Of a stretch of DNA of 64,000 nucleotides, positions 467 to 33,500 are shown piece by piece; positions within the stretch are counted from its first letter, which is position 1, and each line of letters opens with the position of its first letter. A program made the position numbers and the translations under genes. This DNA comes from Macrostomum lignano (taxonomy: Eukaryota): positions 62,001-126,000 of the forward strand of contig NIVC01002005.1 in the NCBI GenBank assembly GCA_002269645.1, written 5' to 3'. The notes under the pieces were generated by a model that did not search any database, had not been told where the DNA came from, and worked only from the letters and a program-made list of their open reading frames with translations.

Positions 467-3400
467 GCTGGTCCACCTAACCTACAGACACAACTGAATC
501 AGCTCTCTCAGTCTGTTTGAGGCTTTGGCTCTCAGAAGGTGGTCCACCTAACCTACAGACACAACTCGAACAGATTTCTCTGTCTGTTTAAGGCTCTGGC
601 TCTCAGAGCCGCCGAGAAAGTTTAGTGCCGAGAATGCTTCAGTTTGTTAGAATGCAATCAGAACAGATTCCTAGAAAGTGAGCTAGTCCAGCATCAAGGT
701 AGAACATCTGGATGTGTAACGAGAGGCTCTCGGAGATTCCTGGCTCAGATTATCGCCTAGAAGTGCTTTGGAGTAGCTGGTCCACCTAACCTACAGACAC
801 AACTCGAACAGATTTCTCTGTCTGTTTGAGGCTCTGGCTCTCAGAGCCGCCGAGAAAGTTTAGTGCCGAGAATGCTTCAGTTTGTTAGAATGCAATCAGA
901 ACAGATTCCTAGAAAGTGAGCTAGTCCAGCATCAAGGTAGAACATGGATGTGTAACGAGAGGCTCTCGGAGATTCCTGGCTCAGATTATCGCCTAGAAGT
1001 GCTTTGGAGTAGCTGGTCCACCTAACCTACAGACACAACTCGAACAGATTTCTCTGTCTGTTTAGGCTCTGGCTCTTACAGCCGCCGAGAAAGTTTAGTG
1101 CAGAAAATGCTTCAGTTTGTTAGAATGCAATCAGAACAGATTCCTAGAAAGTGAGCTAGTCCAGCATCAAGGCAGAACATCTGGATGTGTAACGAAAGTC
1201 TCTCGGAGACTCCTGGCTCAGATTATCGCCTAGAAGTGCTTTGGAGTAGCTGGTCCACCTAACCTACAGACACAACTCGAACAGATTTCTGTCTGTTTGA
1301 GGCTCTGGATGTCAGAGCCGCCGAGAAAGTTTAGTGCCGAGAATGCTTCAGTTTGTTAGAATGCAATCAGAACAGATTCCTAGAAAGTGAGCTAGTCCAG
1401 CATCAAGGCAGAACATCTGGATGTGTAACGAGAGGCTCTCGGAGATTCCTGGCTCAGATTATCGCCTAGAAGTGCTTTGGAGTAGCTGGTCCACCTAACC
1501 TACAGACACAACTCGAACAGATTTCTGTCTGTTTGAGGCTCTGGATCTCAGAGCCGCCGAGAAAGTTTAGTGCCGAGAATGCTTCAGTTTGTTAGAATGC
1601 AATCAGAACAGATTCCTAGAAAGTGAGCTAGTCCAGCATCAAGGCAGAACATCTGGATGTGTAACGAGAGGCTCTCGGAGATTCCTGGCTCAGATTATCG
1701 CCTAGAAGTGCTTTGGAGTAGCTGGTCCACCTAACCTACAGACACAACTCGAACAGATTTCTGTCTGTTTGAGGCTCTGGATCTCAGAGCCGCCGAGAAA
1801 GTTTAGTGCCGAGAATGCTTCAGTTTGTTAGAATGCAATCAGAACAGATTCCTAGAAAGTGAGCTAGTCCAGCATCAAGGCAGAACATCTGGATGTGTAA
1901 CGAGAGGCTCTCGGAGATTCCTGGCTCAGATTATCGCCTAGAAGTGCTTTGGAGTAGCTGGTCCACCTAACCTACAGACACAACTCGAACAGATTTCTCT
2001 GTCTGTTTGAGGCTCTGGCTCTCAGAGCCGCCGAGAAAGTTTAGTGCCGAGAATGCTTCAGTTTGTTAGAATGCAATCAGAACAGATTCCTAGAAAGTGA
2101 GCTAGTCCAGCATCAAGGTAGAACATGGATGTGTAACGAGAGGCTCTCGGAGATTCCTGGCTCAGATTATCGCCTAGAAGTGCTTTGGAGTAGCTGGTCC
2201 ACCTAACCTACAGACACAACTCGAACAGATTTCTCTGTCTGTTTGAGGCTCTGGCTCTCAGAGCCGCCGAGAAAGTTTAGTGCCGAGAATGCTTCAGTTT
2301 GTTAGAATGCAATCAGAACAGATTCCTAGAAAGTGAGCTAGTCCAGCATCAAGGCAGAACATCTGGATGTGTAACGAGAGGCTCTCGGAGATTCCTGGCT
2401 CAGATTATCGCCTAGAAGTGCTTTGGAGTAGCTGGTCCACCTAACCTACAGACACAACTCGAACAGATTTCTCTGTCTGTTTGAGGCTCTGGCTCTCAGA
2501 GCCGCCGAGAAAGTTTAGTGCCGAGAATGCTTCAGTTTGTTAGAATGCAATCAGAACAGATTCCTAGAAAGTGAGCTAGTCCAGCATCAAGGCAGAACAT
2601 CTGGATGTGTAACGAGAGGCTCTCGGAGATTCCTGGCTCAGATTATCGCCTAGAAGTGCTTTGGAGTAGCTGGTCCACCTAACCTACAGACACAACTCGA
2701 ACAGATTTCTGTCTGTTTGAGGCTCTGGATCTCAGAGCCGCCGAGAAAGTTTAGTGCCGAGAATGCTTCAGTTTGTTAGAATGCAATCAGAACAGATTCC
2801 TAGAAAGTGAGCTAGTCCAGCATCAAGGCAGAACATCTGGATGTGTAACGAGAGGCTCTCGGAGATTCCTGGCTCAGATTATCGCCTAGAAGTGCTTTGG
2901 AGTAGCTGGTCCACCTAACCTACAGACACAACTCGAACAGATTTCTCTGTCTGTTTGAGGCTCTGGCTCTCAGAGCCGCCGAGAAAGTTTAGTGCCGAGA
3001 ATGCTTCAGTTTGTTAGAATGCAATCAGAACAGATTCCTAGAAAGTGAGCTAGTCCAGCATCAAGGTAGAACATGGATGTGTAACGAGAGGCTCTCGGAG
3101 ATTCCTGGCTCAGATTATCGCCTAGAAGTGCTTTGGAGTAGCTGGTCCACCTAACCTACAGACACAACTCGAACAGATTTCTCTGTCTGTTTGAGGCTCT
3201 GGCTCTCAGAGCCGCCGAGAAAGTTTAGTGCCGAGAATGCTTCAGTTTGTTAGAATGCAATCAGAACAGATTCCTAGAAAGTGAGCTAGTCCAGCATCAA
3301 GGCAGAACATCTGGATGTGTAACGAGAGGCTCTCGGAGATTCCTGGCTCAGATTATCGCCTAGAAGTGCTTTGGAGTAGCTGGTCCACCTAACCTACAGA

Positions 3401-6400
3401 CACAACTCGAACAGATTTCTCTGTCTGTTTGAGGCTCTGGATCTCAGAGCCGCCGAGAAAGTTTAGTGCCGAGAATGCTTCAGTTTGTTAGAATGCAATC
3501 AGAACAGATTCCTAGAAAGTGAGCTAGTCCAGCATCAAGGCAGAACATCTGGATGTGTAACGAGAGGCTCTCGGAGATTCCTGGCTCAGATTATCGCCTA
3601 GAAGTGCTTTGGAGTAGCTGGTCCACCTAACCTACAGACACAACTCGAACAGATTTGTCTGTCTGTTTGAGGCTCTGGCTCTCAGAGCCGCCGAGAAAGT
3701 TTAGTGCCGAGAATGCTTCAGTTTGTTAGAATGCAATCAGAACAGATTCCTAGAAAGTGAGCTAGTCCAGCATCAAGGCAGAACATCTGGATGTGTAACG
3801 AGAGGCTCTCGGAGATTCCTGGCTCAGATTATCGCCTAGAAGTGCTTTGGAGTAGCTGGTCCACCTAACCTACAGACACAACTCGAACAGATTTGTCTGT
3901 CTGTTTGAGGCTCTGGCTCTCAGAGCCGCCGAGAAAGTTTAGTGCCGAGAATGCTTCAGTTTGTTAGAATGCAATCAGAACAGATTCCTAGAAAGTGAGC
4001 TAGTCCAGCATCAAGGTAGAACATGGATGTGTAACGAGAGGCTCTTGGAGATTCCTGGCTCAGATTATCGCCTAGAAGTGCTTTGGAGTAGCTGGTCCAC
4101 CTAACCTACAGACACAACTCGAACAGATTTGTCTGTCTGTTTGAGGCTCTGGCTCTCAGAGCCGCCGAGAAAGTTTAGTGCCGAGAATGCTTCAGTTTGT
4201 TAGAATGCAATCAGAACAGATTCCTAGAAAGTGAGCTAGTCCAGCATCAAGGCAGAACATCTGGATGTGTAACGAGAGGCTCTCGGAGATTCCTGGCTCA
4301 GATTATCGCCTAGAAGTGCTTTGGAGTAGCTGGTCCACCTAACCTACAGACACAACTCGAACAGATTTCTGTCTGTTTGAGGCTCTGGATCTCAGAGCCG
4401 CCGAGAAAGTTTAGTGCCGAGAATGCTTCAGTTTGTTAGAATGCAATCAGAACATTTTCCTAGAAAGTGAGCTAGTCCAGCATCAAGGCAGAACATCTGT
4501 ATGTGTAACGAGAGGCTCTCGGAGATTCCTGGCTCAGATTATCGCCTAGAAGTGCTTTGGAGTAGCTGGTCCACCTAACCTACAGACACAACTCGAACAG
4601 ATTTCTGTCTGTTTGAGGCTCTGGCTCTCAGAGCCGCCGAGAAAGTTTAGTGCCGAGAATGCTTCAGTTTGTTAGAATGCAATCAGAACAGATTCCTAGA
4701 AAGTGAGCTAGTCCAGCATCAAGGTAGAACATGGATGTGTAACGAGAGGCTCTCGGAGATTCCTGGCTCAGATTATCGCCTAGAAGTGCTTTGGAGTAGC
4801 TGGTCCACCTAACCTACAGACACAACTCGAACAGATTTCTCTGTCTGTTTGAGGCTCTGGCTCTCAGAGCCGCCGAGAAAGTTTAGTGCCGAGAATGCTT
4901 CAGTTTGTTAGAATGCAATCAGAACAGATTCCTAGAAAGTGAGCTAGTCCAGCATCAAGGTAGAACATGGATGTGTAACGAGAGGCTCTCGGAGATTCCT
5001 GGCTCAGATTATCGCCTAGAAGTGCTTTGGAGTAGCTGGTCCACCTAACCTACAGACACAACTCGAACAGATTTCTCTGTCTGTTTGAGGCTCTGGCTCT
5101 CAGAGCCGCCGAGAAAGTTTAGTGCCGAGAATGCTTCAGTTTGTTAGAATGCAATCAGAACAGATTCCTAGAAAGTGAGCTAGTCCAGCATCAAGGCAGA
5201 ACATCTGGATGTGTAACGAGAGGCTCTCGGAGATTCCTGGCTCAGATTATCGCCTAGAAGTGCTTTGGAGTAGCTGGTCCACCTAACCTACAGACACAAC
5301 TCGAACAGATTTGTCTGTCTGTTTGAGGCTCTGGCTCTCAGAGCCGCCGAGAAAGTTTAGTGCCGAGAATGCTTCAGTTTGTTAGAATGCAATCAGAACA
5401 GATTCCTAGAAAGTGAGCTAGTCCAGCATCAAGGCAGAACATCTGTATGTGTAACGAGAGGCTCTCGGAGATTCCTGGCTCAGATTATCGCCTAGAAGTG
5501 CTTTGGAGTAGCTGGTCCACCTAACCTACAGACACAACTCGAACAGATTTCTCTGTCTGTTTGAGGCTCTGGCTCTCAGAGCCGCCGAGAAAGTTTAGTG
5601 CCGAGAATGCTTCAGTTTGTTAGAATGCAATCAGAACAGATTCCTAGAAAGTGAGCTAGTCCAGAATCAAGGCAGAACATCTGGATGTGTAACGAGAGGC
5701 TCTCGGAGATTCATGGCTTAGATTATCGCCTAGAAGTGCTTTGGAGTAGCTGGTCCACCTAACCTACAGACACAACTCGAACAGATTTCTGTCTGTTTGA
5801 GGCTCTGGATCTCAGAGCCGCCGAGAAAGTTTAGTGCCGAGAATGCTTCAGTTTGTTAGAATGCAATCAGAACAGATTCCTAGAAAGTGAGCTAGTCCAG
5901 CATCAAGGCAGAACATCTGGATGTGTAACGAGAGGCTCTCGGAGATTCCTGGCTCAGATTATCGCCTAGAAGTGCTTTGGAGTAGCTGGTCCACCTAACC
6001 TACAGACACAACTCGAACAGATTTCTCTGTCTGTTTGAGGCTCTGGATCTCAGAGCCGCCGAGAAAGTTTAGTGCCGAGAATGCTTCAGTTTGTTAGAAT
6101 GCAATCAGAACAGATTCCTAGAAAGTGAGCTAGTCCAGCATCAAGGCAGAACATCTGGATGTGTAACGAGAGGCTCTCGGAGATTCCTGGCTCAGATTAT
6201 CGCCTAGAAGTGCTTTGGAGTAGCTGGTCCACCTAACCTACAGACACAACTCGAACAGATTTCTCTGTCTGTTTGAGGCTCTGGCTCTTAGGTGGTCCAC
6301 ATAACCTACAGACACAACTGAAGCAGCTCTCTCAGTCTGTTTGAGGCTTTGGCTCTCAGAAGGTGGTCCACCTAACCTACAGACACAACTCGAACAGATT

Positions 6401-8272: not shown

Positions 8273-9587
8273 CTGCCTGCCTGTATATATCTTTGCCTTA
8301 ATTAATGTTAATTTGCTTGATTTTTTTTTCTCGTATGCATCTGTTCTCATAGTCTTTTTGTTTCTTCCTGACTGTCGGCGTCGATCTGTCTGTTTTTTTA
8401 TTTTTCTACTGTCTCTGTGTCTGTAGCTGTTAGTTGTTCTGTCTGCTTGCTTCTGTCTGTCCACTTGCTCTATTTAAGCAACGAAATGGCTTGTCAATCT
8501 CATTGTGTCAAACTGTGCCGTTTCATCTACCGCCATTCCAAATCAATTCTGATTTATGATGTTCTTCAAATTATTTTGTTTTATTCTCAAACTGCTATTC
8601 CTAATTTTGCTAGTTGCACTCATTTTTTAACTTTTTTCCGCACGTGTTACTTTATTTTTATTTTGCTACTTATGAGTAGTTGAGTAACATATTTTTAGCA
8701 ATTTTTATATAAAGACTTCCAATTAGAGATCAATATTCACCTACTGCAACTGTGTAAACGGTTCATCGAAATCATATTGATATGAAATCTCATTGTAGCC
8801 ATAATTTATTATAAATATTTGTTTTGTTAAAATAATTTATTATAAAATATGTGAAAGAAATACTTATTAATTGGTGCTGATCAAATCTTCGTAAAAAGCC
8901 TGTCATATACTGATATAATATTATAACTTAGCTTGTCTTGTTTGTAGACTGTTTACTGTGTCTTAACTCATCAAAGTTATTCCATTGATTTTTCTAAGTT
9001 TTCATGTCAAAGTTCATCTAATCGATCAATTTTTATTAAGAGGCTTTCTTATTGCGCCAAAATACTTTTTTGTTATAATCAGGTTCCTTCCAGCTTGTCT
9101 GTGTCTGGACTGACAATGAATTCAATGCTCAGTTAAAAGTTATATTATTAAATTTAGATATACATAATGCTTATACGAGTTATATATTGATATATATTGT
9201 CAACTAAATTAATTTAGATTTTTATATTTTTATTATCCTTGATAGGATACTAATCCAGTATTTCTTTTTGTTAAACAAAAATTAAATGATAAATTCAATA
9301 GTAAAACTTGATTAGAAGTTAATAATATAGATAACAACTTTGAATTCCATCTTCGTTGAACTTTCACATTTGACCAATTCGCATGTCCTCTAGTTACGTG
9401 TTATTTATTCGCTTTCTTTGTCTAGATTTCTCACCTAGAGTATTCCTACGCAGTAAATCATATAGTAAATTCCTTTCAATTTATCCCCTATAAAACCTCC
9501 CCATTCACCAATTGACCTTCACGAGCTTATATGATAATTCAAATTGCGTTGACGCATTACAGGCACCAAAACAAATTCTATTGCCGT

Positions 9588-12500
9588 ATGGACCAAGAGC
9601 ATCCGGATAATTGCGCTCGCGAAGACCCGGCAGCTGAGCTTCATCTTCCATCGCCAAGGCAACAGCCGCCGCCTCCTCTGCCTCCTCCTCCTCTTGATCC
9701 CACAACATTCGCCTTGGCCATGTCTTGTACTGACTTGAGCCGTAGATTAGCTAATCAGTTTTCAGATGAACAGCTGCAGCAGCAGCATCAACAAAGAGCT
9801 CAAGCTCAAGCTTACAAAGATGATGACTTAGAATCGTCTAGCGTTGAATTTGACGAACCAAATAGCAATCATCGACAGCAGCGGCTGCAGGACGACTTTG
9901 GCAATAATAGCGGCTCGGATGTTTCCGACATATCGAAGTCTGATCATAGCGCCAACGGCTTGCCTACTGACGAAAGCTTAAATCGTCTGCTAGAGAAATA
10001 TAATCTCAGAGCTGGTGATGCCGCCAAACCGCTTACTGTTGGAGTTCACAACGGCAGCTCCAGTTATGATAATTGGCGCACGTTCAGTACCACTGGTTAC
10101 CAGGGACAGCGCGTTGGAAACGGCTCGGTTGTGTCTCCGCAGCATCCTCAACCGCCACCGCCTCCGCCACCTGCTCAGGCTTCTCCAGCTCAGCAGAAAC
10201 AACAAATTTCTGTCTACGACTATTTATCCGAAGAGACAAAACGCTATTTAAGTCAGGCAAAGTTTAACAGTTTAGAAGAAGATTTTGTTGAACGATCAAC
10301 GGCCCAGGCTGCTGCTGTTACTGCGGCTGCTGCTACTGTTGCTTCGTCTGGGACGACAAGAAGTCCAAAGGCTTCTTATTCGTCACCTTCTGTGCAACAG
10401 CAACAACAACAGCAACCGCAGTATTTCATCAACAAGTACATGGAGAACATTAAAACGATGGTATCGGATGCTTTAACTTTTCGACCAGTGTCTTCACCAT
10501 CAACAACTGCCGCTGCTGCTGCTGTTGCTTCTGATTCTTCAACTTTCAAACCGTCTAGAGAGAAATCAAAGGACCCGAAGCAGCGTCAGTTAACGTCTGG
10601 TTCAACGCGATCGCATAATAAACCGTCTGCTTCGACCGCTGTGCCAGACTGCACCGCTGCAGTTGACGCGTCGACCTATTCGGTGCGTCAGCTGGACCCA
10701 GACGTGCATCGCTGGCTGAATAGTTTAAGTCTCCGAAATCCAGACAAATATGCTGCTCTGTTTGAGCGTCACGAAATCGATATGGAGAGTCTGTTGTTGC
10801 TTAATACCGAGGGTCAATTGCGTAAGCTTGGCGTTACAGCTATTGGTCCGATGACTAAGATGTTGCATTCAATTCGCGAGTTGAATAGCCAGAGAAATCG
10901 GAAACGGCCAGCTTCTGCTCCTCAGCAGGCTCTGGCATCTGCTAGGCACCGACCTGAAGGTGTACCGCCCTTGCACCTGCACATGGCCAAAGTGGTGGAG
11001 CGTCAACAGAAGCAGAAACAATTGAAACAAAAGCAACAGCAACAACAGCAGGTCGCGGCGTCGCCTCAACCCTGGATTCCCGGTGGAGCCAGGGGTAGGC
11101 TTGATGCCAAACAGCAGCAAAAGCAGAAACAACAACAACAACAACAGCATCATCAACCGGCTTCATCAAAGCCTGCAATCTCTGCAAAGAAGCCTGCTCA
11201 ATCATCTCATCCAGTAACTTCGCCAACATCCAATCATCATCCTCTAATAAACAATAAACAGTTGGTCTCCCAAGCGGAGCGCGACATAGCCAAAGCTGCT
11301 CAGAAAGTGAAACAGAAAGAGCTGCGCGAGAAAGAGCAACTACTCGAAGAACGTCGCCAGCACAACGAATGGCGTCAGCGTCGCGACGACATTCTCAGGC
11401 ATCGCCGGCCAAATGCGCCGACACCATCGACCACACCGCGTACGCCTCGCAAAGATGTGCCCGCCAAGCAGGCAGCGGCTGTGTCAAAATCCAATTCGAA
11501 CTCGCATTCAAAGGGTTCAACAACTGAGGACACTTCTGTGTCGGCATTTCGCAGTGAGATTAGCGAAATTGAAAGAAAAATAAGCGAACTGTTGAACGAT
11601 AACGGTGGCTCGGGTCAAGCAGCTTCGTCTGGTAGTTTATCTGCCGCGGCCGGGGTTAGTCCTAATATGCTGTTGGACTCCGTTGAAACGTTTCAAAAGC
11701 AACTGCGTCAACTGCAAAATCGTGTAGCCTCGCATCGGCAGCAGCAGCAGCAACAGCCGCAGCATCAGTCGCAAAAGCAGCAATCTCCGCCGCAGAAAGA
11801 AGAAGTACGCGTGTCGCAAAGTGTCACGGCTAAGGCTGTTGGCTTTGAATTGCATAGCGGCAATGGGTAAGCATGGTTTTATAAGAAACTTGATGGCTTT
11901 TAGAAGTTGTCATTATGCTGCTACCTGGGGTTTTGGGCACTACAATAATGTAGTGGATGTGTCTAAAGTGGATGCTTCACTTGAAAAGCCAATCAAGCAC
12001 TAATCTTAGCAATGGGTAGTGACCACGTTAATTTAAGCTTGTGCGCGATTGGAAGATGATGATTTGAGAAAGTCAGGGCGGCTGTGCACCCTGTGTGAGC
12101 GTGTGTATGAGTGCTTGTTTGCTGTGTACAGTATTGGCGCGCTCGCTCTCCAAAAACCCCAACTTTAACTCAGCGGCCCAGCTGCCAGTTCTTCATCGGA
12201 TGCGGCCTCGGCAGCTGCTCAAAGACGCACCAGCTGGACTGTGGCAGCCGGATCGTACAAATTCAACGAGAAAGAGCTCATCGGCGAGGGCACCCTGACG
12301 GCGGTGCATCGCGGCCGTCTAGATGGCGAAGTTGTCGCCGTGAAGCGTTTAAAATTGAAGCTGAGCTCGGACGAAGACCGGTCCTATCTAGCCGCCGAGG
12401 CCAACTTCCTGTGCGGCCTCCGGCACCCCAGACTTAGCCGGGTGCTTGGCTACTGTTTGCGCGGCCGATACCCGTTGCTATTCTGCGAATTAGCTCCCAG

Positions 12501-13520
12501 ACGAAGCTTGTCGGATTACCTGCAGGCTGGCAGTAAAGTCGACCATGCCCTGTTTTATTGCTTAGGCCAAGATCTGGCCGATGCGTTGGAGTTTCTGCAC
12601 TCGCAACGACCGCCACTACTGCACATGCGGCTGTGCAGCAGGAATGTACTGCTCGATGCCAAACTTCGTGGCCAGGTAGTTTATGTTTTAATAAAATTTT
12701 AAGTGTCACTTTGCGATTTAACTAATTAGATTACAAGGGAGTCTGAATAAGTCATAGTTACTCCCGCTCTTTACCCAGGTTTTATAATTAGATGACGAGG
12801 CAGTTTACGTGTCTAAAGAAGAGATAGTTACTCCCCCTGTTTTCCTGATAAAGTCCTAACTATTACAAACCGCAGATCTCCGATCTCGGCCTATCCAAGC
12901 TCCGTCATCAGGCTGGCCAATTGGCTCGCGAGGCTGGCAACGCCTCGGCGGCCTGGGTGCACCTGGCCTGGATGGCACCGGAGCTGCTCACAGCGGCCGA
13001 GTTCGGCCCGCCAGCCGATCTGTACAGCGCCGGCGTCCTGCTATGGGAGCTGCTGTCGGGCAGGCAGCCCTACTCCGGCCAGACCGCCTATTCTATCATC
13101 ACGGCCAAGAAGTCCGGAGCCACCCTCGAGCTGCCGTCTGGTTGTCCGACCATTCTGTCCGACCTCCTGTCCAGACTGTGGGGATCTCCGGACAGTCGGC
13201 CGAATGCTAGCGATTTGAAATCGGCGCTTCGTTCGGCCTGTTTGCCCGGCCGGGCCTGGCCGGATTTGGTCCGACGGGCCGGCGTCACCGAGGCGGCACT
13301 GAGGGACCCCGGCGCCGTCCGACGCTTCCTGGCTAGCGCATGTCGACGGCCGTGTCTTGTCGATTTGTCGACTCCCGACGATGCGATTTCAGCATCGGCC
13401 TCTGGCAGCTTCTGGCTGGTGTCGGAGCCGCGACTGCCGGCTGAGCCTGCTGAGGCTGACGGCGGATTTTCCGCGGAATTTCTGGCTGCAGTTGCTAGAG
13501 CAGCTCGTGGCGACGAGTAG
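9588..13520 (+). CDS. Q/P-rich SAM-domain protein with C-terminal TKL-like (pseudo)kinase domain, ~1141 aa
   Basis: Exons 9588-11866 (alternative ATG 9531), 12174-12675, 12876-13520. Junctions GG|GTAAGC..TTTAACTCAG|C (phase 2) and CAG|GTAGTT..CCGCAG|ATC (phase 0) keep frame. SAM-like segment DVHRWLNSLSL...KYAALFERHEIDMESLLLL...QLRKLGV..IGP at ~10700-10885; kinase motifs IGEG, VAVK, DLG, WMAPE, DLYSAGVLLWEL. The exon 1-2 join is inferred. Confidence 0.75.
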
Positions 13521-14997: not shown

Positions 14998-15745
14998 GAG
15001 TGTACATAGTAGTACACGGGGTGTACATAGTGGCACATAGAGTGTACATAGTAGCACACGGAGTTTACATAGTGGCACACGGAGTGTACATAGTGGCACA
15101 CGGAGTGTACATAGTGGCACACGGAGTGTACATAGTGGCACACGGAGTGTACATAGTGGCACACGGAGTGTACATACTGGCACACGGAGTGTACATAGTG
15201 GCACACGGAGTGTACATAGTGGCAATAGAGTGTACATACTGGCACATAAGGTGTACATAGTGGCACATAGAGTGTACATACTGGCACATAGAGTGTACAT
15301 ACTGGCACTTAGAGTGTACATACTGGCACATAGAGTGTACATACTGGCACGTAGAGTGTACATACTGGCACATAGAGTGTACATACTGGCACATAGAGTG
15401 TACATACTGGCGCACAGAGTGTACATAGTGGCACAGAGTGTACAGTGGCACATAGAGTGTACATACTGGCACAGAGTGTACATACTGGCACATAGAGTGT
15501 ACATACTGGCGCACAGAGTGTACATAGTGGCACAGAGTGTACATACTGGCACAGAGTGTACATACTGGCACATAGAGTGTACATACTGGCACATAGAGTG
15601 TACATACTGGCACATAGAGTGTACATACTGGCGCACAGAGTGTACATAGTGGAATATACTGTACATACTGGCGCACAGAGTGTACATAGTGGCACAGAGT
15701 GTACATGGTGTAATATAGTGTACATAGTGGCACAGAGTGTACATA
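14998..15745 (+). repeat. 21-bp minisatellite (AGAGTGTACATACTGGCACAT)
   Basis: 7-aa periodicity in the overlapping spurious ORFs; ends ~160 bp upstream of the Drosha ATG. Confidence 0.95.
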
Positions 15746-15908
15746 GTGAAATATAGTCTATAGTGTAAATGCCTGAAGATTAGAAATCCAAGAGTCGTCG
15801 GAGTAGGCCAAATTGCCTACAATTATTATCAAATAAGTCACAAAGCTAATTATCTAAATAAAAACTAATTGCGCTAATTATAGTTCTTTAAAATTATTTC
15901 TTGCATGC

Positions 15909-15976
15909 ATGAACGGCACGGGGGATGCGCCACCCGATCCTTCGGCGGCTGCTTGGGCCGCTTGGGCCTCCGCGCA

Positions 15977-16009
<33 letters not shown>

Positions 16010-19000
16010 GCAACAACAACAGGTACCGCCACCTCAACAACAACCCTCTGAGTCTCAAGCAAGCGGTACTCCGCTAGACCAACAGCAGCAACAGCAGCCT
16101 CCTTTAACTAACGGCATGCCTCAATTGCCATCAATGATGTCCTACATGCTGCACGAGTTGTCCGCCGCTTATCATTCTCTGCGTAGCATGCAAAATCCTC
16201 AACAGCAGTTGGCTTCAATGTGGCTAAATCCTGCGCATCCGCCTACGCATCCGCCTACGCATCCGCCTACACATCCGACAACGCACCCGCCTACGAATCC
16301 GCCTACGAATCCGCCTACGAATCCGCCTATGCATCCGCCTACACATCCGCCTACATATCCGCCTACACATCCGCCTACGCATCCGCCTACGCATCCGCCT
16401 ACACATCCGCCTACACATCCGCCTGCGTATTCGAGCACATCTCCCTATCCCTATGCTAGCTACGCGCCCCCCGCTGGGCCGAACTTGAGCTTCCCCGTGC
16501 CGCCTCCGCCGCCGCCTCCGCCGCCCCCGCCGCCGCCACCTCCGCCGTCGGCATCTTCAACCTGCCACCAAGACTCCGGCCCCGTGCCTCTGATGGGCTT
16601 GAAGCCTCGCGCTAGTTTAAAATGGAATGCCGCTGAATTCGAATCGAAGTACGGCTGTGGCTCCTCCGCATCCTCTGCTGCCGAGTCTTCTTCGGCTGCA
16701 AAACTTTTTTCGACTCAATCGTCTTATCTGCAATCGTCTGCTTCTGCTTCTTGCTCTTCATCAAAATCAACTGCTAGCGGCCGGCCTGGCAGCTTCCGAA
16801 ATCCCTACTTTGCCGATCCCAACGTGAAAAAAGAATTAGCAGAGGAGCGGGAGCGAACTAATCCGGAGCTGTCTGTGCCGCAACCGGAAGCCAAAGTGAT
16901 TTCTGGTCCAATCGATTACCGTTACGCCAAGATCAACGCTAATTTACTGGTTGCCAAGCCGTCGCTAATAGCTTTAGAAGAGGAATTCGTGGAAGAAATT
17001 ATGAAGCGTCGCGAACGCGCTCTGGTCGGTCAGCCTCGATGGCGTCCGCTGGTTCGAAACGCCGCTTCAGAAGACGCCGCAGTCGCTGCAGCAGCTGCCG
17101 CTTCCGCCGACGCTGTCGACGCGGTCGAAGCCGACTCGGAGTCGTCATTATCTGACGGCGAAATTGTCGAATCCGAGGCTGTCCGTCAGCACCGAGCTCG
17201 GTTCAAGCTGGTCCGCCAGCGTCACCGGGCCAAGAAGCAGTACGACGATTTGAAAGCCAAAGGCAGAGTCGACCGACTGTCCGGTCTGAATGTCGATGGC
17301 ATGTCCGAAGCGCAGCGACGCGAAATGGAGACGGCGCACAGCACCCATGGAACATCTTTTAGGGAGAAAAAAAGTACGAAGCAATCCATTCAACTTTTCT
17401 TGTTCCATAGACACCTGTAGATGAAAAAAATGAAAAACAGAAAAAAATTTGCGATAGCTTCATGTTTTATTGCACTTTTTGAATTTTCATGTACTTTTAA
17501 TTGGCAAAACAGGAAGACATTCCATAAAAACTGCCATTTCAGCTTACAGGTCATTAGCGAAATAAATTCAGCTACCTTTCTATCCCATACAGCCAAATAA
17601 ATAACTAAAGACTTGTTTACATTGAAGCTAGTATCTCTGCGAGTCACACACTGTTCAAATTAAAGTACCACTAGTCTTGCACAAAGTCTAGATTGATTTG
17701 AGTATTCAATGATCTACAGAGTAACTAAACCTTTATTTCTGGCTCACATAATCGATAGCATTTGATTGGCCAAATCGTTGTACACGCAGCTAAGCTGAAT
17801 GAAATCAACCAATCGATTGCTTAACTTTAGGCGGCCAGTTTTTAACTTAACAGATGTACATCCACCAGACATTTACAATGCTGCACTCGTCTGAAAATTT
17901 CATGCCCGCAAGCAGGCCAACTATAAGGTTCAATGAAAATGTACAATCATGCACTACAAACTCAGTAAACATCTCACAGTGATAGGAAAATCCACTCTAT
18001 CCTAGCATAAAACAACGCCAACAAACTTCAAATAAAGTTATATTCTATCATCAGTTTTATAGCACTTTTGATAGCTCTGCAATGCCTTCAACGGCTTTAA
18101 CTCATTCGGAGAATCGATTGAAAGTATGCCTGATCTGCTTTAAAAAAGGAGCATCTCATGAACCTATTCGTGACGCAAATCTACAACGCATCAATCGAAA
18201 TTTTATCGAAGATATTGACATCACTGATGAAAGTCTTCCAGCATCTTTGTGCGCTCGGTGTCGCAAACTTCTTCTTGATGTCGACAGTGGTAGAAAGCCA
18301 GTGGATGCTCTGCCCCAACCATATGACTTCTCAAAAGTGAAGCAGACAGCAGTCACACGACAGAATCCCCTGTGCCATTGTGATCTGTGTGAAGTCGCCC
18401 GGATGACTCCGATTGGTCAGGGGCTTGGCTCTGCCAAAGTTCCGGCTCACCCGATTGGCCGGCCGAAGAAATCCAACGACCAGCTGCCTGTAGCTTTGCC
18501 AGCTAAAATCTGCCGACGCTGCCTTTGCATCCTCCGGCGAGGAGTCAGTCACTGCTGTACCATCACTCAACGCAGGGAAAACCTGTGCACAGAGTACTCT
18601 GTGGACCAGCGAGGGGCTGAGATGCACGCAGCCAAAGTAATCAAAAGAAAAGCTGTCGATGCGCACGGTGCTGCTCCAATTCAACTGGCAACTCGTGGGC
18701 GTAATCTAACACTCAGTCTCCTAGCCCCATCACAAGCTAAAAACTCGGCTGCTTTTTACGATTCGCCGATCTCAGCATCTGAAATGAGCTGCTTTCAGCA
18801 GGCGCTGAGTCTAAGCAGACGGCAAACGAGGACTGCAGCGCAATTCTTCCGTAAGTGGAAAGGGCGGAAGTCAATTGAAGCAGGCCTGGAGTCGAAGTTG
18901 CAGCAGCTGGACAGCAGCCTCAGCGAGTATTTTTCGGTGACCGATGCAGAGTTTGAGATCAGCGGCGGTCAGAAGAAGCGCTGCTCCGTCGTATTCTGCA

Positions 19001-22000
19001 GGGACCCAGCAGGTCTCATTGATTACATGCTGCAACACCGGAGGGCGCCTTTTGGTTCTGAGTTCGTTGCAAAAGTTGGAATGGACAGTGGTGGTGATTT
19101 TCTGAAAATCTGTCTCAGCCTCATAGTTGACACATCAACTGATGCAAGTGACTTCGAGACTCAGGCTGCCGATGTCTGCTCAAGCCACTTTGCCGAAGGA
19201 GGTGTCAAGAGACTCATGCTACTAGGAATTGTTCAAGGAGTGAAAGAAACGTATGCCAACCTTAAGACCATGCTGGATCTTTTGAATATGAAAGGCGTCC
19301 GATATTACTGCTCGATGGACATGAAGATGGCCAACATCTTCCTTGGGCTTCAGGCATGCAGCAGCTTGCATCCGTGTCCTTGGTGCGAGTGCAGGCGGAA
19401 CCTTTTTGGTGATGCGCATCGTGACATCCAGCTGCGGACGCTCGGTGCCATTCGAAGAAATGCAGCCCAGTATCAGCAGGCAGCTCGGCAGCATCGGGGC
19501 AGTTTGCAGCTTGGAGCTGCCAACTTCAAGAATTGTGTGCATGATCCACTAACAGATCTGCCTGACGACACCGAGGTTCTAACGATCGTGCCTCCAATGG
19601 AACTGCACCTGATGCTGGGAATTACCAACCGGCTGCTGGAAGAACTGGACACGCGACTCCAAGCGACAAATGACTGTTCGGTGCGCATTGATGACTGGCT
19701 TGCTCGACTGGGAGTTCAGCGACAGCCTCAGCATGGCAGGCAGATAAACGGCAATGACTGCGCAAAGGTGCTGGAGTCAGTAGATCAGTTGGAGCAGATG
19801 GTCCGAGACTGCGATGCTTGCCTGGGAATGCCCGTTGTGTTTGCTCTGCGGTGCTTTCGAGAGGTAAAGAGAACCTGCTTCAGCCTTGAACTGCGCGATG
19901 GCTTCGAGACCGCCGTGGCTCACTTTGCTCAGGCTTACGCGGATCTCGGTATTAGCACCACGCCGAAGGTGCACGCGCTGATTGACCACGTGGTGCCTTT
20001 CCTCTCAAGCGCTGACAACAGGGAAGCCCGACATGGACTAGGCTTTTGGTCTGAGCAAGCTGGCGAAGCTGTGCATCGCGATTTCAACAGCCTGTGGTGC
20101 CGCAGCTACAAAGTTAGTCCTACAAATCCTCAGTATGCACAACAGCTGCTGAAGTGCACTGTTGCGTACTGCTCGCGGCATTTGTGACCTGCTTTAATAG
20201 TAAGAACATTTTCTTTTTCTAAGTCTTTTTTTGTTTGCAATAGCAGATAGAAAAAATGTGTCTTTAAGCTATCTATAATATTTGTTTATGGTAAAAACTT
20301 ATTTAAAAAACACTATTTAAAGTAGCCTAATGCACTGCATATAAGTTTTTTTATCGGCCTGATAGTTTAAGTTAAGCAGGTAGCTGAATTTAATACGCTG
20401 ATGACCTGCAAGCTGAAATGGCAGTTTTTATGGAATGTCTTCCTGTTTTGCCAATTAAAAGTACATGAAAATTCAAAAGGTGCAATAAAGCATGAAGCTA
20501 TCGCAAATTTTTTTCTGTTTTTCATTTTTTTCATCTACAGGTGTCTATGGAACAAGAAGAGTTGAGTGGATTGCTTCGTACTTTTTTTCTCCCTAAAGGA
20601 TGTTCCATGGGTGCTGTGGGCGGTGCGCAAGATTACAATTCGTACTCTGTGCCAACAACAAGAGGTTGAGCACAAGATGCGACATCCGCAGAAGCTCAAT
20701 CCGCACCTGTGGTATAATGAGCCTGGCGAATTGAATGATGGGCCCAGGTGCTACTGCAAACCGGAGTATCAGGTTGGTCTCTTCTGTGGGTTACAACTAC
20801 TGCAGGATCTGACAACTTTTTGCTTTCTGCAGTTCTTGAATTTATCACTAAAATCGTTTTCGTTTCTAGTGAGTGGGTCGTTTAAACTCATTCACCAATT
20901 GTTCCCCAACTCACCAATTATTCACCGATTCACTAATGATTCAACAACTCACCAATTATTCATCGGTTTACCAACTCACCAATGATTCACCGATTCTCCA
21001 ACTCATTAATGATTCACCGATTCACTAATGATTCACCAACTCACCAATGATTCACCGATTCTTCAACTCACCAATTATTCACCGATTTACCAGCTCACCA
21101 ATGATTCACTAATTTACCAACTCACCAATGACTCACCGATTCTCCAACTCACCAATGATTCACCGATTCTTCAACTCACCAATTATTCACCGATTCTTCA
21201 ACTCACAAATTATTCACCGATTTACCAGCTCACCAATGATTCACCGATTTACCAGCTCACCAATGATTCACCAATTTACCAGCTCACCAATGATTCACCG
21301 ATTTACCAGTTCACCAATGATTCACCAATTTACCAACTCACCAATGATTCACCTATTTAACAACTCACCAATGATTCACCGATTCTCCAACTCATTAATG
21401 ATTCACCGATTCACTAATGATTCACCAACTCACCAATGATTCACCGATTCTTCAACTCACCAATTATTCACCGATTTACCAGCTCACCAATGATTCACTA
21501 ATTTACCAACTCACCAATAACTCACCGATTCTCCAACTCACCAATGATTCACCGATTCTTCAACTCACCAATTATTCACCGATTCTTCAACTCACAAATT
21601 ATTCACCGATTTACCAGCTCACCAATGATTCACCGATTCACCAACTCACCAATTATTCACCGATTCACCAACTCATTAATGATTCACCGATTCTCCAACT
21701 CACCAATTATTCACCGATTCACCAACTCATTAATGATTCACCGATTCACCAACTCACCAATGATTCACCGGTTCACTAACTCACTAATGATTCAACAACT
21801 CACTAATGATTCACCAATTTACCAACTCACCAATGATTCACCAATTCACCAGTGAGTTTATGCCATGCAACTCTTCTAATCTCTGAGTGTACTTACAAGG
21901 AAAACTCAACAAGACCCCATTGCACCCGCAGGTCGGCCCATCGCACTGCAAATACGAAGGCGAGACGGCTATTCCCAAATGCGACCCGCATAGCAACAAT

Positions 22001-24053
22001 CCCAACAAGCTTCATCACTATCGAATCTGCGTCCTGCCAAACACAAATTATTCCGCTAAGCAGCCTTCGGTTATAATGTACAAAAATCTCAAATACGAAT
22101 TCGAAGGTTTCGGCTTATTGAGCCACTATAAACTTGACGATTTGCCACCGTGCAAATTCCATCGCTACAACATATTCTACAAGGTGCACTTGGTGCCGGA
22201 ACCTCTGCCGCCAAATTTCACCGTCCGTTCGCTAGATTTGTTAAGCGACTTTGTCATGTACGAATTGTTGGAACTGCTTGACGAGACTCTCTATCCTTCG
22301 GGTGCTGATGAGGCCACGTCTTGTCGGTGTTTTCACCTTTATCCAAGATTCTCTCGTCGCGGACACGACGGCGCTTTGGAGCTGTTGCCAGCCTGGGCGA
22401 TTCTGCAGCACCTGCTGGACAATAGCGGCTTATTAATTGAGCCAGACTGTTTGGATAGCGTTCTTCGAATGTCAAAAGAGGAGTGGCGCAATTTTATTGA
22501 TCAGTGGCGCGGCCAGTTAATCACCTATCCAGGTAAGAAGCCGTCAACTATTCGAGTGGATCAAGTTGACAGATGCTCAGCAGCCGCTTCTGCAGCTTCA
22601 TCAGACGGTCGGGACAAGCCAACCTATCCGTATGTGATTCATATCACCCAGGTGCCGCTTAAATTCGGTTGGCAAGCCGAAAACACTTACCGGCGCACGC
22701 TGAAGTCCTACTTTCGCGAACAGTACATGATCGTGTTTAATCCACGGGTTGGCGCTGAGCAAAGAGAGAAGCTGCAGCATTTGCGCGAAAAAATGCGCGT
22801 TGTTGAAGAGGCGCCAGATAAGCGGCGCGAGGTGACGGTAGAGATGAGCGCTGAAGGCTTCCGGCGCACAGGTCTCAGACCGGATGTGACTCAGTTCGCC
22901 TTGTTGCTGCCGCACTTTCTGTCTTTCTGTCGACTTCACCGAAGCATCTCAGCCTTAGAGAGTCGCATTGGCTACGTCTTCAAGGACAAATCGCTGTTCC
23001 ATCAGGCCATGACTCATCCGTCGTCGATTCGTTCCACTCTTGGCTTGAACTCTGATCACGTGCTCAACAGCATGCTGAATTGCGGTCCCCGGCTGTTAGA
23101 ATACGGCGAAGTTCGAGAAATCCGCCAGGCAACAAGAAAGCACGGCTTAGCTTACACAGTCAACGTCATGTCCATGCTGCCAAGTATTTTAGAGAAGAAA
23201 TCGCCAATATTTGGCAACGATCGACTCGAGTATCTTGGCGACGCGGTTGTTGAACTCATCGTTACTACTCACCTGTTCTATATCTTGCCGGAGGTTAGCG
23301 AAGGTCATCTTGACGCATTTCGTCAGTCATTGGTGATGAATGCCCACCTGGCCTTGCTGGCTAGGCGGCTGGGGCTGCACTGCTACCTGCAGTACGCGCA
23401 CGGCATGGATTTCTATCTGGATTCCACTTTTATGCACGCTTATTCCGATGCATTCGAAGCCTTCATGGCCGCTGTGTATTTGGATGGCGGCTTAGCTCTG
23501 GCTAATCGCATCTTTGCTGACGTCATGTGGGGCAGCGATCCGTCCTGTCTCCGGGTCTGGTGCACACCGCCGCCGCATCCCATCCAGCTGGAGTATCCTG
23601 ACGGAGATCGGCACCTGTTGCCACAGCATCCTAAGCTCAAGGTGCGTATAATAGTACTTCGATGCAGAAGTTTCCTCTGTCTCTCTCCCTTCAACTCTTG
23701 CAGTGTCTGAGATCTGTTATGGCTTGCTCAGGGTGGCTCAGACACGTCCGCATATGCACACTCTGGCTTTTCGATCTGATTTGACAACTGTAGTTTCAAG
23801 GCTTGATTTTGTTGTGTAGGGAATTGTCTTAGGGGTGAAATTTTTGTAGTTTAAGTTCAGAAAAGTGCGCCTGAGTAAAAACAACTGCAATTAAGAAGTT
23901 CCCTGTCTCATTTATGCAGGAAGGTTCGACCTTCAAATGAACCCTAGATTTGTAAATTGTTCTGTTGTTTCATTTATTGATCAAAAGCCTATGTGATATG
24001 TATTGTATATCTATTTGTCTGTCTTTCTTTCTGTCTGTCTATCTGTCTGTCTC

Positions 24054-27598: not shown

Positions 27599-30500
27599 GT
27601 TTAGCGAGTGTTTCACATCTTGTGAATGAACATTGCCTAGCAGTGCAATGAAGACAGCAGCATGCCCATCACGGCTTCATATAAGCTCTCCCCGATGGGT
27701 TTCTCGCACAGCCGAGCTTATTCATAATTTTTTCTTATTACTTTCCTCTGTTTCCAATAATAGCTGGTTCCACTCGGCTCTCTTCCCTAATACCCATATT
27801 TACCATTCATTGCTATCGGCTTATGTGGGGCTTCTTGGAGCCGATCATGCTGTAGAAAATGAAAAGAGCAGTTGAAGTTGGCGGCCTTAAATTGATCAAG
27901 AAATGCTTTGGGAGCTGCTAATACTGGATTTATTGGTCTTTTTTGTGAGCGTGTCATAAAAACTCTATTAGTGGTCTTCGAGGCCACACAGTATAATTCC
28001 CCTTGGGATTTACTTGTAAAATTGGCTTGGCTGAAGTCCTCTTTCCTAAGTTGTAAAAATATTGGAAACTTCTGTATTAATATCTCTGTTAATAGTAAAG
28101 ACTTCTATAGCCATTGGCTCAGCTGACCCAGGCGGATTAGTCTGCCTTGGGAATTGGGAAAAGAATTAAGAGGATTAGGATTGGGATTAGAACCCGCTTG
28201 GAACTTGTTAGTCTACTATTTTTCCGTGAACCCTGTGCGACGTCACTCCACGCTGGGTTCCCTAGTGACTCCGCCGTGAAGCTTCTTGTCACTCGCTAAC
28301 CAGCATTAAGCATTTCCAGCTTCCTAAATCTAAGCATTCTTGTTCACTAAGCATCACTTAGATCACTCTAATAATGCAACCTTGTCACTCTAAGAAAGCA
28401 TCCTTGTCACTCTAAGAAAGCATCCTTGTCACTCTAAGAAAGCAATCTTGTCACTCTGATGAAGCATCTTGTCACTCCAATAAAGCATCCTTGTCGCTTC
28501 GAATAAATGACCCTTGTCACTCTAATAATGAATCCTTGTCACTCTAAGAAAGCATCCTTGTCACTCTGATAAAGCATCCTTGTCACTCTAATAAAGCATC
28601 CTTGTCACTCTAAGAAAGCAATCTTGTCACTCTAAGAAAGCAATCTTGTCACTAATGAAACATCCTTGTCACTCTAATAAATCAACCTCGTCACTTTATT
28701 AAAGGCATCCTTGTCACTCCAATAAAGCATCCTTGTCACTTCGAATAAAGGACCCTTGTCACTCTAATAATGAATCCTTGTCACTCTAAGAAAGCATCCT
28801 TGTCACTCTGATAAAGCATCCTTGTCACTCTGATGAAGCATCCTTGTCACTCTGATAAAGCATCCTTGTCACTTCGAATAAAGGACCCTTGTCACTCTAA
28901 TAATGAATCCTTGTCACTCTAAGAAAGCATCCTTGTCACTCTGATGAAGCATCTTGTCACTCCAATAAAGCATCCTTGTCACTTCGAATAAATGACCCTT
29001 GTCACTCTAATAATGAATCCTTGTCACTCTAAGAAAGCATCCTTGTCACTCTGATAAAGCATCCTTGTCACTCTAATAAAGCATCCTTGTCACTCTAAGA
29101 AAGCAATCTTGTCACTCTAAGAAAGCAATCTTGTCACTAATGAAACATCCTTGTCACTCTAATAAATCAACCTCGTCACTTTATTAAAGGCATCCTTGTC
29201 ACTCCAATAAAGCATCCTTGTCACTTCGAATAAAGGACCCTTGTCACTCTAATAATGAATCCTTGTCACTCTAAGAAAGCATCCTTGTCACTCTGATAAA
29301 GCATCCTTGTCACTCTGATGAAGCATCCTTGTCACTCTGATAAAGCATCCTTGTCACTTCGAATAAAGGACCCTTGTCACTCTAATAATGAATCCTTGTC
29401 ACTCTAAGAAAGCATCCTTGTCACTCTGATGAAGCATCCTTGTCACTCCAATAAAGCATCCTTGTCACTTCGAATAAAGGACCCTTGTCACTCTAATAAT
29501 GAATCCTTGTCACTCTAAGAAAGCATCCTTGTCACTCTAAGAAAGCATCCTTGTCACTCTAATGAAACAAGCTTGTCACTTCGAAAGAAGCAAACTCCTT
29601 GTTGTCACTGTAAACCGCAGAATCAGTCTTGACAATTCAATTTCGAACGGTGCACAAATTCTGTCGCCATTCATTCAATCAAACATTTGATGCGAAAATA
29701 ATTTCAGAAACTCACTCGGTTGGAACGCCGAATCGGTATGGAATTTCGGCACATTCGTTTGCTTGCTCAGAGCTTGTCTTACACCAGACGGTTCAATCAG
29801 CTGACTCTGTGAGTTTCCTCGTTTTAGATTTTGCTTTTTGTCTTTGTGACTGCGTATTCTTGATATCTGTCTCCATTCTATCCTGTCTATCCCATTCTAT
29901 CCTGTCCATCCCCATTTTATCCTGTCTATCCCCATTCTCTCCTGTCTATCCCCATTCTCTCCTGTCTATCCCCATTCTCTCCTGTCTATCCCCATTCTAT
30001 CCTGTCTATCTCCATTCTCTCCTGTCTATCCCCATTCTATCCTGTCTATCCCCATTCTATCCTGTCTATCATCATACTATACTATCTACCCCCCATTCTA
30101 TCCTATCTATCCCCATTCTATCCTGTCTATCCCCATTCTATCCTGTCTATCCCCATTCTCTCCTGTCTATCCCCATTCTATCCTGTCTATCCCCATTCTC
30201 TCCTGTCTATCCCCATTCTCTCCTGTCTATCCCCATTCTATCCTGTCTATCATCATACTATACTATCTACCCCCCATTCTATCCTGTCTATCCCCATTCT
30301 CTCCTGTCTATCCCCATTCTATCCTGTCTATCATCATACTATACTATCTACCCCCCATTCTATCCTATCTATCCCCATTCTATCCTGTCTATCCCCATTC
30401 TATCCTGTCTATCCCCATTCTATCCTGTCTATCCCATTCTATCCTGTCTATCCCCATTCTCTCCTGTCTATCCCCATTCTATCCTGTCTATCCCATTCTA

Positions 30501-33500
30501 TCCTGTCTATCCCCATTCTCTCCTGTCTATCCCCATTCTATCCTGTCTATCATCATACTATACTATCTACCCCCCATTCTATCCTATCTATCCCCATTCT
30601 ATCCTGTCTATCCCCATTCTATCCTGTCTATCCCCATTCTATCCTGTCTATCCCATTCTATCCTGTCTATCCCCATTTTATCCTGTCTATCCCATTCTAT
30701 CCTGTCTATCCCCATTTTATCCTGTCTATCCCCATTCTATCCTGTCTATCCCATTCTATCCTGTCTATCCCCATTCTCTCCTGTCTATCCCCATTCTATC
30801 CTGTCTATCCCATTCTATCCTGTCTATCCCCATTCTCTCCTGTCTATCCCCATTCTATCCTGTCTATCATCATACTATACTATCTACCCCCCATTCTATC
30901 CTATCTATCCCCATTCTATCCTGTCTATCCCCATTCTATCCTATCTATCCCCATTCTATCCTGTCTATCCCCATTCTATCCTGTCTATCCCCATTCTATC
31001 CTGTCTATCCCCATTCTATACTATCTACCCCCATTCTCTCCTGTCTATCCCCATTCTCTCCTGTCTATCCCCATTCTATCCTGTCTATCCCCATTCTATC
31101 CTGTCTATCCCCATTCTATACTATCTACCCCCATTCTCTCCTGTCTATCCCCATTCTATCCTGTCTATCATCATACTATACTATCTACCCCCCATTCTAT
31201 CCTGTCTATCCCCATTCTATCCTGTCTATCCCCATTCTCTCCTGTCTATCTCCATTCTATCCTGTCTATCCCCATTCTATCCTGTCTATCCCATTCTATC
31301 CTGTCTATCCCCATTCTCTCCTGTCTATCCCCATTCTCTCCTGTCTATCCCCATTCTATCCTGTCTATCCCCATTCTATCCTGTCTATCCCATTCTATCC
31401 TGTCTGTCCCCATTCCATACTGTCCATCCCCATTTTATCCTGTCTATCCCCATTCTATCCTGTCTATCCCCATTCTATCCTGTCTATCCCCATTCTATCC
31501 TGTCTATCCCCATTCTATCCTGTCTATCCCATTCTATCCTGTCTATCCCCATTTTATCCTGTCTATCCCATTCTATCCTGTCTATCCCCATTTTATCCTG
31601 TCTATCCCCATTCTATCCTGTCTATCCCATTCTATCCTGTCTATCCCCATTCTCTCCTGTCTATCCCCATTCTATCCTGTCTATCCCATTCTATCCTGTC
31701 TATCCCCATTCTCTCCTGTCCATCCCGATTCTATCCTGTCTATCCCCATTCTATCCTGTCCATCCTTATTCTATCATGTCTATCCCCGTTCTATCCTGTC
31801 TATCCCCATTCTATCCTGTCTATCCCATTCTATCCTGTCCATCCCCATTTTATCCTGTCTATCCCCATTCTATCCTGTCTATCCCATTCTATCCTGTCCA
31901 TCCCCATTTTATCCTGTCTATCCCCATTCTATCCTGTCTATCCCATTCTATCCTCTCCATCCCCATTCTATCCTTTCTATCCCCATTCTACTCTGTCTGT
32001 CCCCATTCTATCCCATCTATATTCAGTCTATCCTATCTTTATTTCTATCTATCTGTCTCCATTATATCCTATCTAGCCCCTGAAAATCACCCCGAGTCAA
32101 TTAAGAATTTCCCTCAGCTAAATAAGAATCGCCCTCAGCTAAATCAGAATCGCCCTCAGCTAAATTAGAAACACAATCAGCTAAATTAGAATCGCCCTCA
32201 GCTACATTAGAATCGCCCTGAGCTAAATTTGAATCGCCCTCAGCTTGTTTAGAATCACCCTCAGCTAAATTAGAAACACAATCAGCTAAATTAGAATCGC
32301 CCTCAGCTACATTAGAATCGCCCTGAGCTAAATTTGAATCGCCCTCAGCTTGTTTAGAATCACCCTCAGCTAAATTAGAAACACAATCAGCTAAATTAGA
32401 ATCGCCCTCAGCTACATTAGAATCGCCCTGAGCTAAATTTGAATCGCCCTCAGCTTGATTAGAATCGCCCTCAGCTACATTAGAATCGCCCTGAGCTAAT
32501 ATTGAATCGCCCTCAGCTAAATGAGAATCGCTCTCAGCTAAATGAGAATCGCCCTCAGCTAAGTTAGAATCGCCCTCAGATAAGTTTGAATCGCCCTCAG
32601 CTAAATCTGAATCGCCCTTAGCTAAATCAGAATCGCCCTCAGCTAAATCAGAATCGCCCTCAGCTAAATCAGAATCGCCCTCAGCTAAATCAGAATCGCC
32701 CTCAGCTACCTTAGAATCGCCCTCAGCTAAATCAGAATCGCCATCAGCTAAATCAGAATCGCCATCAGCTAAATCAGAATCGCCCTCAGCTACCTTAGAA
32801 TCGCCCTCAGCTAAATCAGAATCGCCATCAGCTAAATCAGAATCGCCCTCAGCTAAATCAGAATCGCCCTCAGCTACCTTAGAATCGCCCTCAGCTAAAT
32901 CAGAATCGCCCTCAGCTAAATCAGAATCGCCCTCAGCTAAATCAGAATCGCCCTCAGCTAAATCAGAATCGCCCTCAGCTACCTTAGAATCGCCCTCAGC
33001 TAAATCAGAATCGCCATCGGCTAAATCAGAATCGCCCTCAGCTAAATCAGAATCGCCCTCAGCTAAATCAGAATCGCCATCAGCTAAATCAGAATCGCCC
33101 TCAGCTAAATCAGAATCGCCATCAGCTAAATCAGAATCGCCCTCAGCTAAATCAGAATCGCCCTCAGCTAAATCAGAATCGCCCTCAGCTACCTTAGAAT
33201 CGCCCTCAGCTAAATCAGAATCGCCATCAGCTAAATCAGAATCTCCCTCAGCTAAATCAGAATCGCCCTCAGCTAAATCAGAATCGCCATCAGCTAAATC
33301 AGAATCGCCCTCAGCTAAATCAGAATCGCCCTCAGCTAAATCAGAATCGCCCTCAGCTACCTTAGAATCGCCCTCAGCTACCTTAGAATCGCCCTCAGCT
33401 AAATCAGAATCGCCATCAGCTAAATCAGAATCGCCCTCAGCTAAATCAGAATCGCCCTCAGCTAAATCAGAATCGCCATCAGCTAAATCAGAATCGCCCT

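Follow-up and report, generated by a model that had tools for sequence, protein, structure and literature searches.

Does an animal live without Drosha when a DNA transposon sits in a coding exon of its Drosha gene? The question is raised by a stretch of 64,000 nucleotides (nt) from Macrostomum lignano DV1, here called the window (assembly Mlig_3_7, GCA_002269645.1, contig NIVC01002005.1, positions 62001-126000), to which all coordinates refer unless another locus is named. A preliminary description, made from these letters alone, had placed an intact transposon of 3282 bp at 17333-20622, with a duplicated GGCG, inside a coding exon of Drosha. Position, length and duplication all hold to the base. 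The best reading of our results, and a probable one, is that a Chapaev-group transposon hit the first coding exon of one of several Drosha copies and that the disabled copy is buffered by its paralogs. We found no indication of an animal living without Drosha.

Insertion of a transposon into Drosha exon 1

The element occupies 17337-20618 on the forward strand, in the same orientation as Drosha, between two copies of the target-site duplication GGCG (17333-17336 and 20619-20622). Its left terminal inverted repeat (17337-17577, forward strand) starts with 5'-CACAGCA and has an A-rich block at about nucleotides 31-37; the right one (20378-20618, reverse strand) ends with TGCTGTG-3' and holds a splice acceptor-like sequence, ctttttttctccctaaag, that ends at 20598. 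Each end measures about 241 nt, and the two agree at 96% of positions (nine mismatches). The 30-nt terminus occurs at two places only in the window, the ends of the element, against 0 expected by chance. The sole long open reading frame (ORF) of the element (18082-20187, forward strand) encodes a transposase of 701 amino acids (aa) and is free of introns and stops. These ends and the target duplication, together with the fold and the family profile of the transposase, identify an autonomous DNA transposon of the Chapaev type.

The 5' part of Drosha exon 1 (15909-17336, 476 codons), which is not annotated in GenBank, is an open frame from ATG 15909. Reading from this ATG enters the left end of the element and meets its first in-frame stop, TAG at 17418-17420, 27 codons further on, giving 503 aa without RNase III domains or a double-stranded RNA-binding domain (dsRBD). 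Removal of the element and one copy of the duplication, which joins 17336 to 20623, produces a single continuous Drosha frame that matches P0001, another M. lignano Drosha model, at 100% on both sides of the junction. The 3' part of exon 1 (20623-20772), a short stretch after the element, has the conserved HPxxL.. motif. It is followed by exon 2 (21932-23641; central domain and RNase IIIa), exon 3 (29708-29808) and exon 4 (35191-36346; RNase IIIb, dsRBD, acidic tail and stop), all on the forward strand and with GT-AG introns between them. Joined together, 20677-20772, 21932-23641, 29708-29808 and 35191-36346 give exactly the GenBank protein PAA61703.1, uninterrupted, and the restored full-length Drosha has 1514 aa. 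The early stop, the frame recovered by excision, the downstream exons without stops or frameshifts and the retention of the acidic residues of both RNase III domains had all been put forward in the preliminary description, and each was borne out. Of the Drosha features compared, one uninterrupted frame is missing here, and only a deletion of 3286 nt restores it.

The 5' part of exon 1 encodes a polyQ and P-rich N-terminus, the start of the central domain, an acidic stretch and a basic linker; ahead of the HPxxL..WYNxPGE motif it can be aligned to the Drosha of insects and humans. Against human DROSHA structures, exon 2 scored E=1.5e-138 and the final exons E=9e-80, the latter across RNase IIIb and the dsRBD, and the alignment to human DROSHA is unbroken from the WYNEPGE motif through the dsRBD. 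The catalytic acidic motifs are kept (RLEYLGD and SDAFEAF in RIIIDa, RLEHLGD and ADVLESF in RIIIDb) and align to those of human DROSHA. Domain searches matched PF00636, and PF26050 and PF00035 on the annotated product. On these sequence comparisons the gene is Drosha, a class 3 RNase III. Where vertebrate Drosha has P-rich and RS-rich regions, exon 1 carries a polyQ and a polyP run together with about 20 repeats of the PPTH type.

The insertion site lies in a lineage-specific basic linker, between an acidic/serine run and the conserved HPxxL..WYNEPGE motif, at about residues 501-507 in human DROSHA numbering. In the alignment this linker of about 55 aa is absent from insect and human Drosha. 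It has no stops, is in frame and basic, and shows the GC-rich third positions of coding sequence; it is an exon in a model of ML2, an older M. lignano assembly that is independent of Mlig_3_7.

In PAA61703.1 the annotated coding sequence begins only at 20677, where the first in-frame ATG downstream of the element lies; such a start is what one would expect if transcripts do not cross the element. PAA61703.1, the M. lignano Drosha of GenBank, is a truncated model of the transposon-disrupted copy, and this matters for the design of RNA interference, knock-out and microRNA studies. The fetched locus that carries it (BOX15_Mlig001174g1) was 100% equal to the window over 10677-46346; we found no mention of the gene Mlig001174 in the literature.

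The empty site and the other Drosha copies

The ML2 model P0001 (UniProt A0A1I8GXX7) reads straight through the insertion site, with REMETA followed directly by VRKITIR. Its residues 1-49 correspond to the last 49 codons of the 5' part of exon 1 (17190-17336) and its residues 49-101 to 20620-20778, both at 100%. The filled junctions are 17336/17337 and 20618/20619, and the empty site joins GAGACGGCG to GTGCGCAAG. Five equivalent 3286-nt deletions lead from one to the other; they begin with GG, GC, CG, GC or CA and end with TG, GG, GG, GC or CG, respectively, and none is a GT-AG or GC-AG intron. Since no canonical intron yields P0001 from the filled locus, P0001 derives from an empty site. It also represents a distinct Drosha copy, given three residue differences from the window copy (T/S, R/Q and C/S) and one frameshifted stretch. 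Among the copy-specific variants are EGE(T/S)A and EF(R/Q)H, for which the window copy has EGET and EFRH. A cDNA-derived Drosha, ALD16266.1 (P0020), is a third sequence variant and has an intact dsRBD. Another ML2 model, P0019, carries the variants of the window copy and starts with MRHPQKL, at the same post-element ATG, which lends indirect support to the presence of the filled locus in the second assembly.

P0019 bears on whether the insertion is a fixed genomic feature, or instead a product of misassembly or a rare event in somatic cells or in a minor allele. The assembly was made from pooled worms, from a repeat-rich polyploid, and has known errors. However, the 4-bp target duplication is perfect and the 241-bp ends match each other, which is what transposition leaves behind and a chimeric join does not, and the independent P0019 model has the same variants and the same start. 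We regard such an origin as highly improbable.

The genome of DV1 is made of three paralogous subgenomes, and M. lignano is a neopolyploid in which 3-copy blocks represent 69.6% of Mlig_3_7. The coding sequences of paralogs differ by 1.1%, insertions and deletions dominate the divergence between paralogs, and 93% of read pairs map to several paralogs (PMC10733133). In ML2, three Drosha gene models occur on three contigs (PMC5594548 Table S2). With three subgenomes and a divergence dominated by insertions and deletions, a transposon insertion private to one of three Drosha copies belongs to the expected background. Of the alternatives proposed earlier, the three models, the three subgenomes and the empty site of P0001 support the one in which the filled gene is a paralog buffered by another copy.

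Rescue at the RNA level had been proposed as well. In that case the filled copy would still yield a working Drosha, either because cryptic splicing removes the element from the RNA or because the host linker itself is spliced out. An in-frame deletion might be tolerated, since insect and human Drosha lack the linker, and the right end offers the strong acceptor-like site at 20598. We listed every GT..AG pair on either side of the element that leaves an open frame. On paper, the donor at 17374 (aaa/GTACGA) is in frame with the acceptor at 20662, replacing 14 aa by 13, and so are donors at 17181 or 17185 with acceptors at 20664 or 20662. However, the candidate donors are all weak (they have C at +3 or read GTACGA), the acceptors that keep the frame are rich in purines, and the sole strong acceptor, at 20598, is without a good in-frame donor; its best pair, with 17374, leaves 61 nt and shifts the frame. 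No exact GT-AG or GC-AG intron corresponds to the element plus one duplication copy, the linker itself is coding-like and exonic in ML2, and exon 1 is not linked to the rest of the gene in the RNA-seq-guided GenBank annotation. A normal intron at this position in homologous Drosha genes would have spoken against the preliminary description; none was present at the corresponding place in the one beetle orthologue that was checked. RNA-level rescue is possible but unsupported, and we do not favour it, considering it very unlikely.

Identity and relatives of the element

Scans of the transposase against Pfam and PHROG gave no matches, and for this reason it was classified through a structure model and a family profile. 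The AlphaFold model had a mean pLDDT of 71, with most of the core above 85. In a Foldseek search against the PDB, the top 41 matches were all RAG1 core or Helicoverpa Transib transposase, with E-values down to 2e-11. The family sequence profile matched RAG1 (E=1e-4) and amphioxus RAG1L, and aligned D413 with D708 of RAG1, the CxxC motif with C727/C730, H(4)H with H937/H942 and E662 with E962. Ten homologues share D335, D413, E658, E662, C432xxC435, L508-H509 and H631x4H636 without variation, and the predicted catalytic triad is D335, D413 and E662.

Published hallmarks of Chapaev elements are a 3-4-bp duplication, CAC...GTG ends and the motifs C(2)C, LH and H(4)H (PMC4079192). All of them are present here: the duplication is the 4-bp GGCG, its length being confirmed by the in-frame empty-site protein P0001, the ends are CACAGCACCC... 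and ...GGGTGCTGTG, and the transposase has C(2)C, LH and H(4)H. The element shares the RAG1-core-like fold with Transib in the narrow sense. A 5-bp duplication, as in Transib, is not found, the 5-nt flanks being CGGCG and GGCGG. A spliceosomal intron or an intron-generating transposon does not fit the insert either, there being no canonical sites that remove it exactly. By published hallmarks, fold and profile, we assign the element to the RAG1/Transib group, as a member of the Chapaev type. Chapaev was described by Kapitonov & Jurka (2007); Yuan & Wessler (2011) assign it to CMC, and Kapitonov & Koonin (2015) to the Transib superfamily (PMC4079192, PMC4411706). Our literature search found no paper linking Chapaev elements to Macrostomum.

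The N-terminal region of the transposase is Cys-rich, with conserved C57, C60, C98, C100, C103, C147 and H157. The model of residues 1-165, a small zinc-finger domain, gave solely weak matches, to ZAD domains (7POK, E=0.13, probability 0.97). A recent preprint reports that the ZFa module of the Chapa/RAG1 NZD likewise resembles ZAD domains. The model is consistent with a Chapa (NZD-like) zinc finger in this region, but does not prove it.

An exhaustive protein search with the transposase returned 3012 relatives at E<=0.001. The best of them was P0025 (UniProt A0A1I8I628), an ML2 model named ACAP2-like (ArfGAP, PH, ankyrin), which a word-indexed protein search had missed. P0025 holds three pieces of the transposase, identical to the window ORF at 402 of 402 residues, and its other 1600 residues do not map to the window, which indicates a second copy of the element at an unrelated locus. 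Neither the window nor five fetched M. lignano loci contain other copies of the element ends. Divergence of the two inverted ends was considered for dating and rejected, as both ends are copied from the donor element. That the element has a second copy, an intact ORF and a perfect duplication, and is absent from a paralogous site, suggests a recent transposition. That the Chapaev family is transposing in M. lignano now, or was very recently, is a tentative proposal that we would not call probable. If the family is active, it would provide a naturally active Chapaev/RAG1-like transposon, with ends like recombination signals, in an animal open to transgenesis, and the insertion would also catch the loss of a Drosha copy in a neopolyploid at its first step. 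The family appears young and its RAG1-like transposase is intact; it would be a candidate for the study of RAG-type transposases, and possibly a tool.

Three paralogous contigs, NIVC01000927.1 (L002), NIVC01002186.1 (L003) and NIVC01003948.1 (L004), carry a related element of 3.8 kb (family P0010, ends CACACATG) at one shared site with shared flanks. This insertion is a direct view of the three subgenomes. To its left, two contigs have TCTCC and the third has TCTC, which makes the duplication ambiguous between 4 and 5 bp, and a copy of the P0009 family had CAG ends and no clear duplication; neither family yielded a rule for duplication length.

We also compared the ends of the window element (17337-17396 and 20559-20618) with those in L002 (2419-2478 and 6175-6234) and in a further locus, L005 (2503-2562 and 5811-5870). 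The three M. lignano transposase families, mutually only 47-48% identical, have a common end architecture: a heptamer-like CA(C/G) terminus is followed by some 17-23 variable bases and then by a conserved AGG(G)..AAAAnAA(A) block. The window element has CACAGCA, then 23 nt and then AAAAAAAGT, a layout that recalls the heptamer, spacer and nonamer of recombination signals as well as Transib ends.

Fate of the filled copy and comparison with known systems

The proposed course of events is as follows. In line DV1, a cut-and-paste Chapaev-group transposon, whose DDE transposase resembles RAG1 and Transib, inserted into exon 1 of one Drosha copy; this would have happened after that copy had split from at least one other, most simply after the genome multiplication. 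The insertion duplicated the 4-bp target GGCG and breaks the frame in the basic linker. Its structure, the empty site of a second copy, the presence of several Drosha copies and the class of the transposase are observed, while its timing, the loss of function and the buffering are inferred. A transcript driven by the gene's promoter would reach a stop 27 codons into the element, and the filled copy would give no full-length Drosha. Its output would be at most the 503-aa N-terminal fragment, or an N-terminally truncated protein from M20677, and microRNA processing would be carried by the uninterrupted paralogous copy or copies. A read-through transcript passes six AATAAA/ATTAAA signals, and nonsense-mediated decay or premature polyadenylation would be its likely fate.

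A fragment of human DROSHA, residues 390-1365, is sufficient for processing in vitro (PMC10270192). The insertion site maps inside this minimal active fragment, and a protein that starts at M20677 would lose about 120 of its residues. Deletion up to residue 490 reportedly inactivates human DROSHA, according to work by Han et al. in 2004. These limits concern the proposal that the filled copy makes a truncated Drosha from M20677, as in PAA61703.1, with partial, altered or dominant-negative function, from a start inside the element or through a spliced leader trans-spliced at 20598. The annotated coding sequence does start at 20677 in an RNA-seq-guided annotation, 38.8% of M. lignano genes are trans-spliced, the right end provides a pyrimidine tract and an AG, and the downstream exons are intact. 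Yet 93% of read pairs map to several paralogs, so that reads of the other copies may underlie the model; the basic linker would be gone along with those residues, and the upstream ATGs at 20600 and 20607 open reading frames that are out of frame. Expression of such a truncated Drosha appears improbable to us, though less so than a rescue by splicing.

Four points weigh against a disabled copy buffered by its paralogs. The only empty-site model, P0001, has an out-of-frame stretch in its dsRBD, where the nucleotides for 20 conserved residues of the window copy (about 35655-35720) are read in the -1 frame, giving 15 aa; this is either a real defect of the paralog or an indel error of ML2. The other Drosha loci were judged here from gene models and from protein and cDNA sequences. 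Fully intact downstream exons fit continued use as well as they fit a young insertion, and the filled copy might, judging by its sequence, be served by cryptic splicing or by a downstream start. We nevertheless prefer the buffered, disabled copy. On this reading, what is seen here is an ordinary early step in the loss of a gene copy, not the loss of Drosha, and it would offer a concrete, datable case in which a paralog of an essential, usually single-copy gene was hit soon after genome multiplication.

Two neighbouring genes lie on the same strand as Drosha: a SAM-domain protein kinase upstream (about 9531-13520) and a Cys-loop ligand-gated channel (Neur_chan) downstream, from 40921 onward. 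The window is crowded with minisatellite arrays (35 rows at a score of at least 400, including a 236-bp unit repeated 24 times), whose spans include 540-6288, 14998-15748, 20938-21794, 28349-29580, 29873-35080 and many more. A 21-bp array immediately precedes the Drosha ATG, and most of the last Drosha intron consists of units of 20-21 bp, about 5 kb in all.

Both parts of this locus are of known kinds, an exon-insertion allele and a Chapaev transposon, of which it is a new instance. As in other Chapaev elements, there is a 4-bp duplication, the ends are the invariant 5'-CAC...GTG-3', the DDE transposase has C(2)C, LH and H(4)H and the transposase is the single gene; the Cys-rich N-terminal region, a putative zinc-finger region, may be a further likeness. 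The window element differs from them by its very long inverted ends of 241 bp and by the absence of a Pfam match; among annotated relatives in the same genome the closest reach only 47-48% identity, and one of these may make a 5-bp duplication. With the RAG1 core, amphioxus ProtoRAG RAG1L and the Helicoverpa zea Transib (4WWX, 6B40, 6PQX) it has in common the predicted fold and the catalytic residues aligned by profile, and its ends start with CACAG, like the recombination signal heptamer, with an A-rich block about 21-23 bp further on. In contrast to these systems, its transposase is only 12-16% identical to theirs, its duplication is 4 and not 5 bp, its ends are symmetric and it has no RAG2-like partner gene. 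The target duplication and the premature stop in an exon are those of null or leaky exon-insertion alleles, and the presence of an intact paralog in a recent polyploid is that of fractionation after whole-genome duplication. Unlike the usual cases of either kind, the gene hit here is a normally single-copy, essential enzyme of the microRNA pathway.

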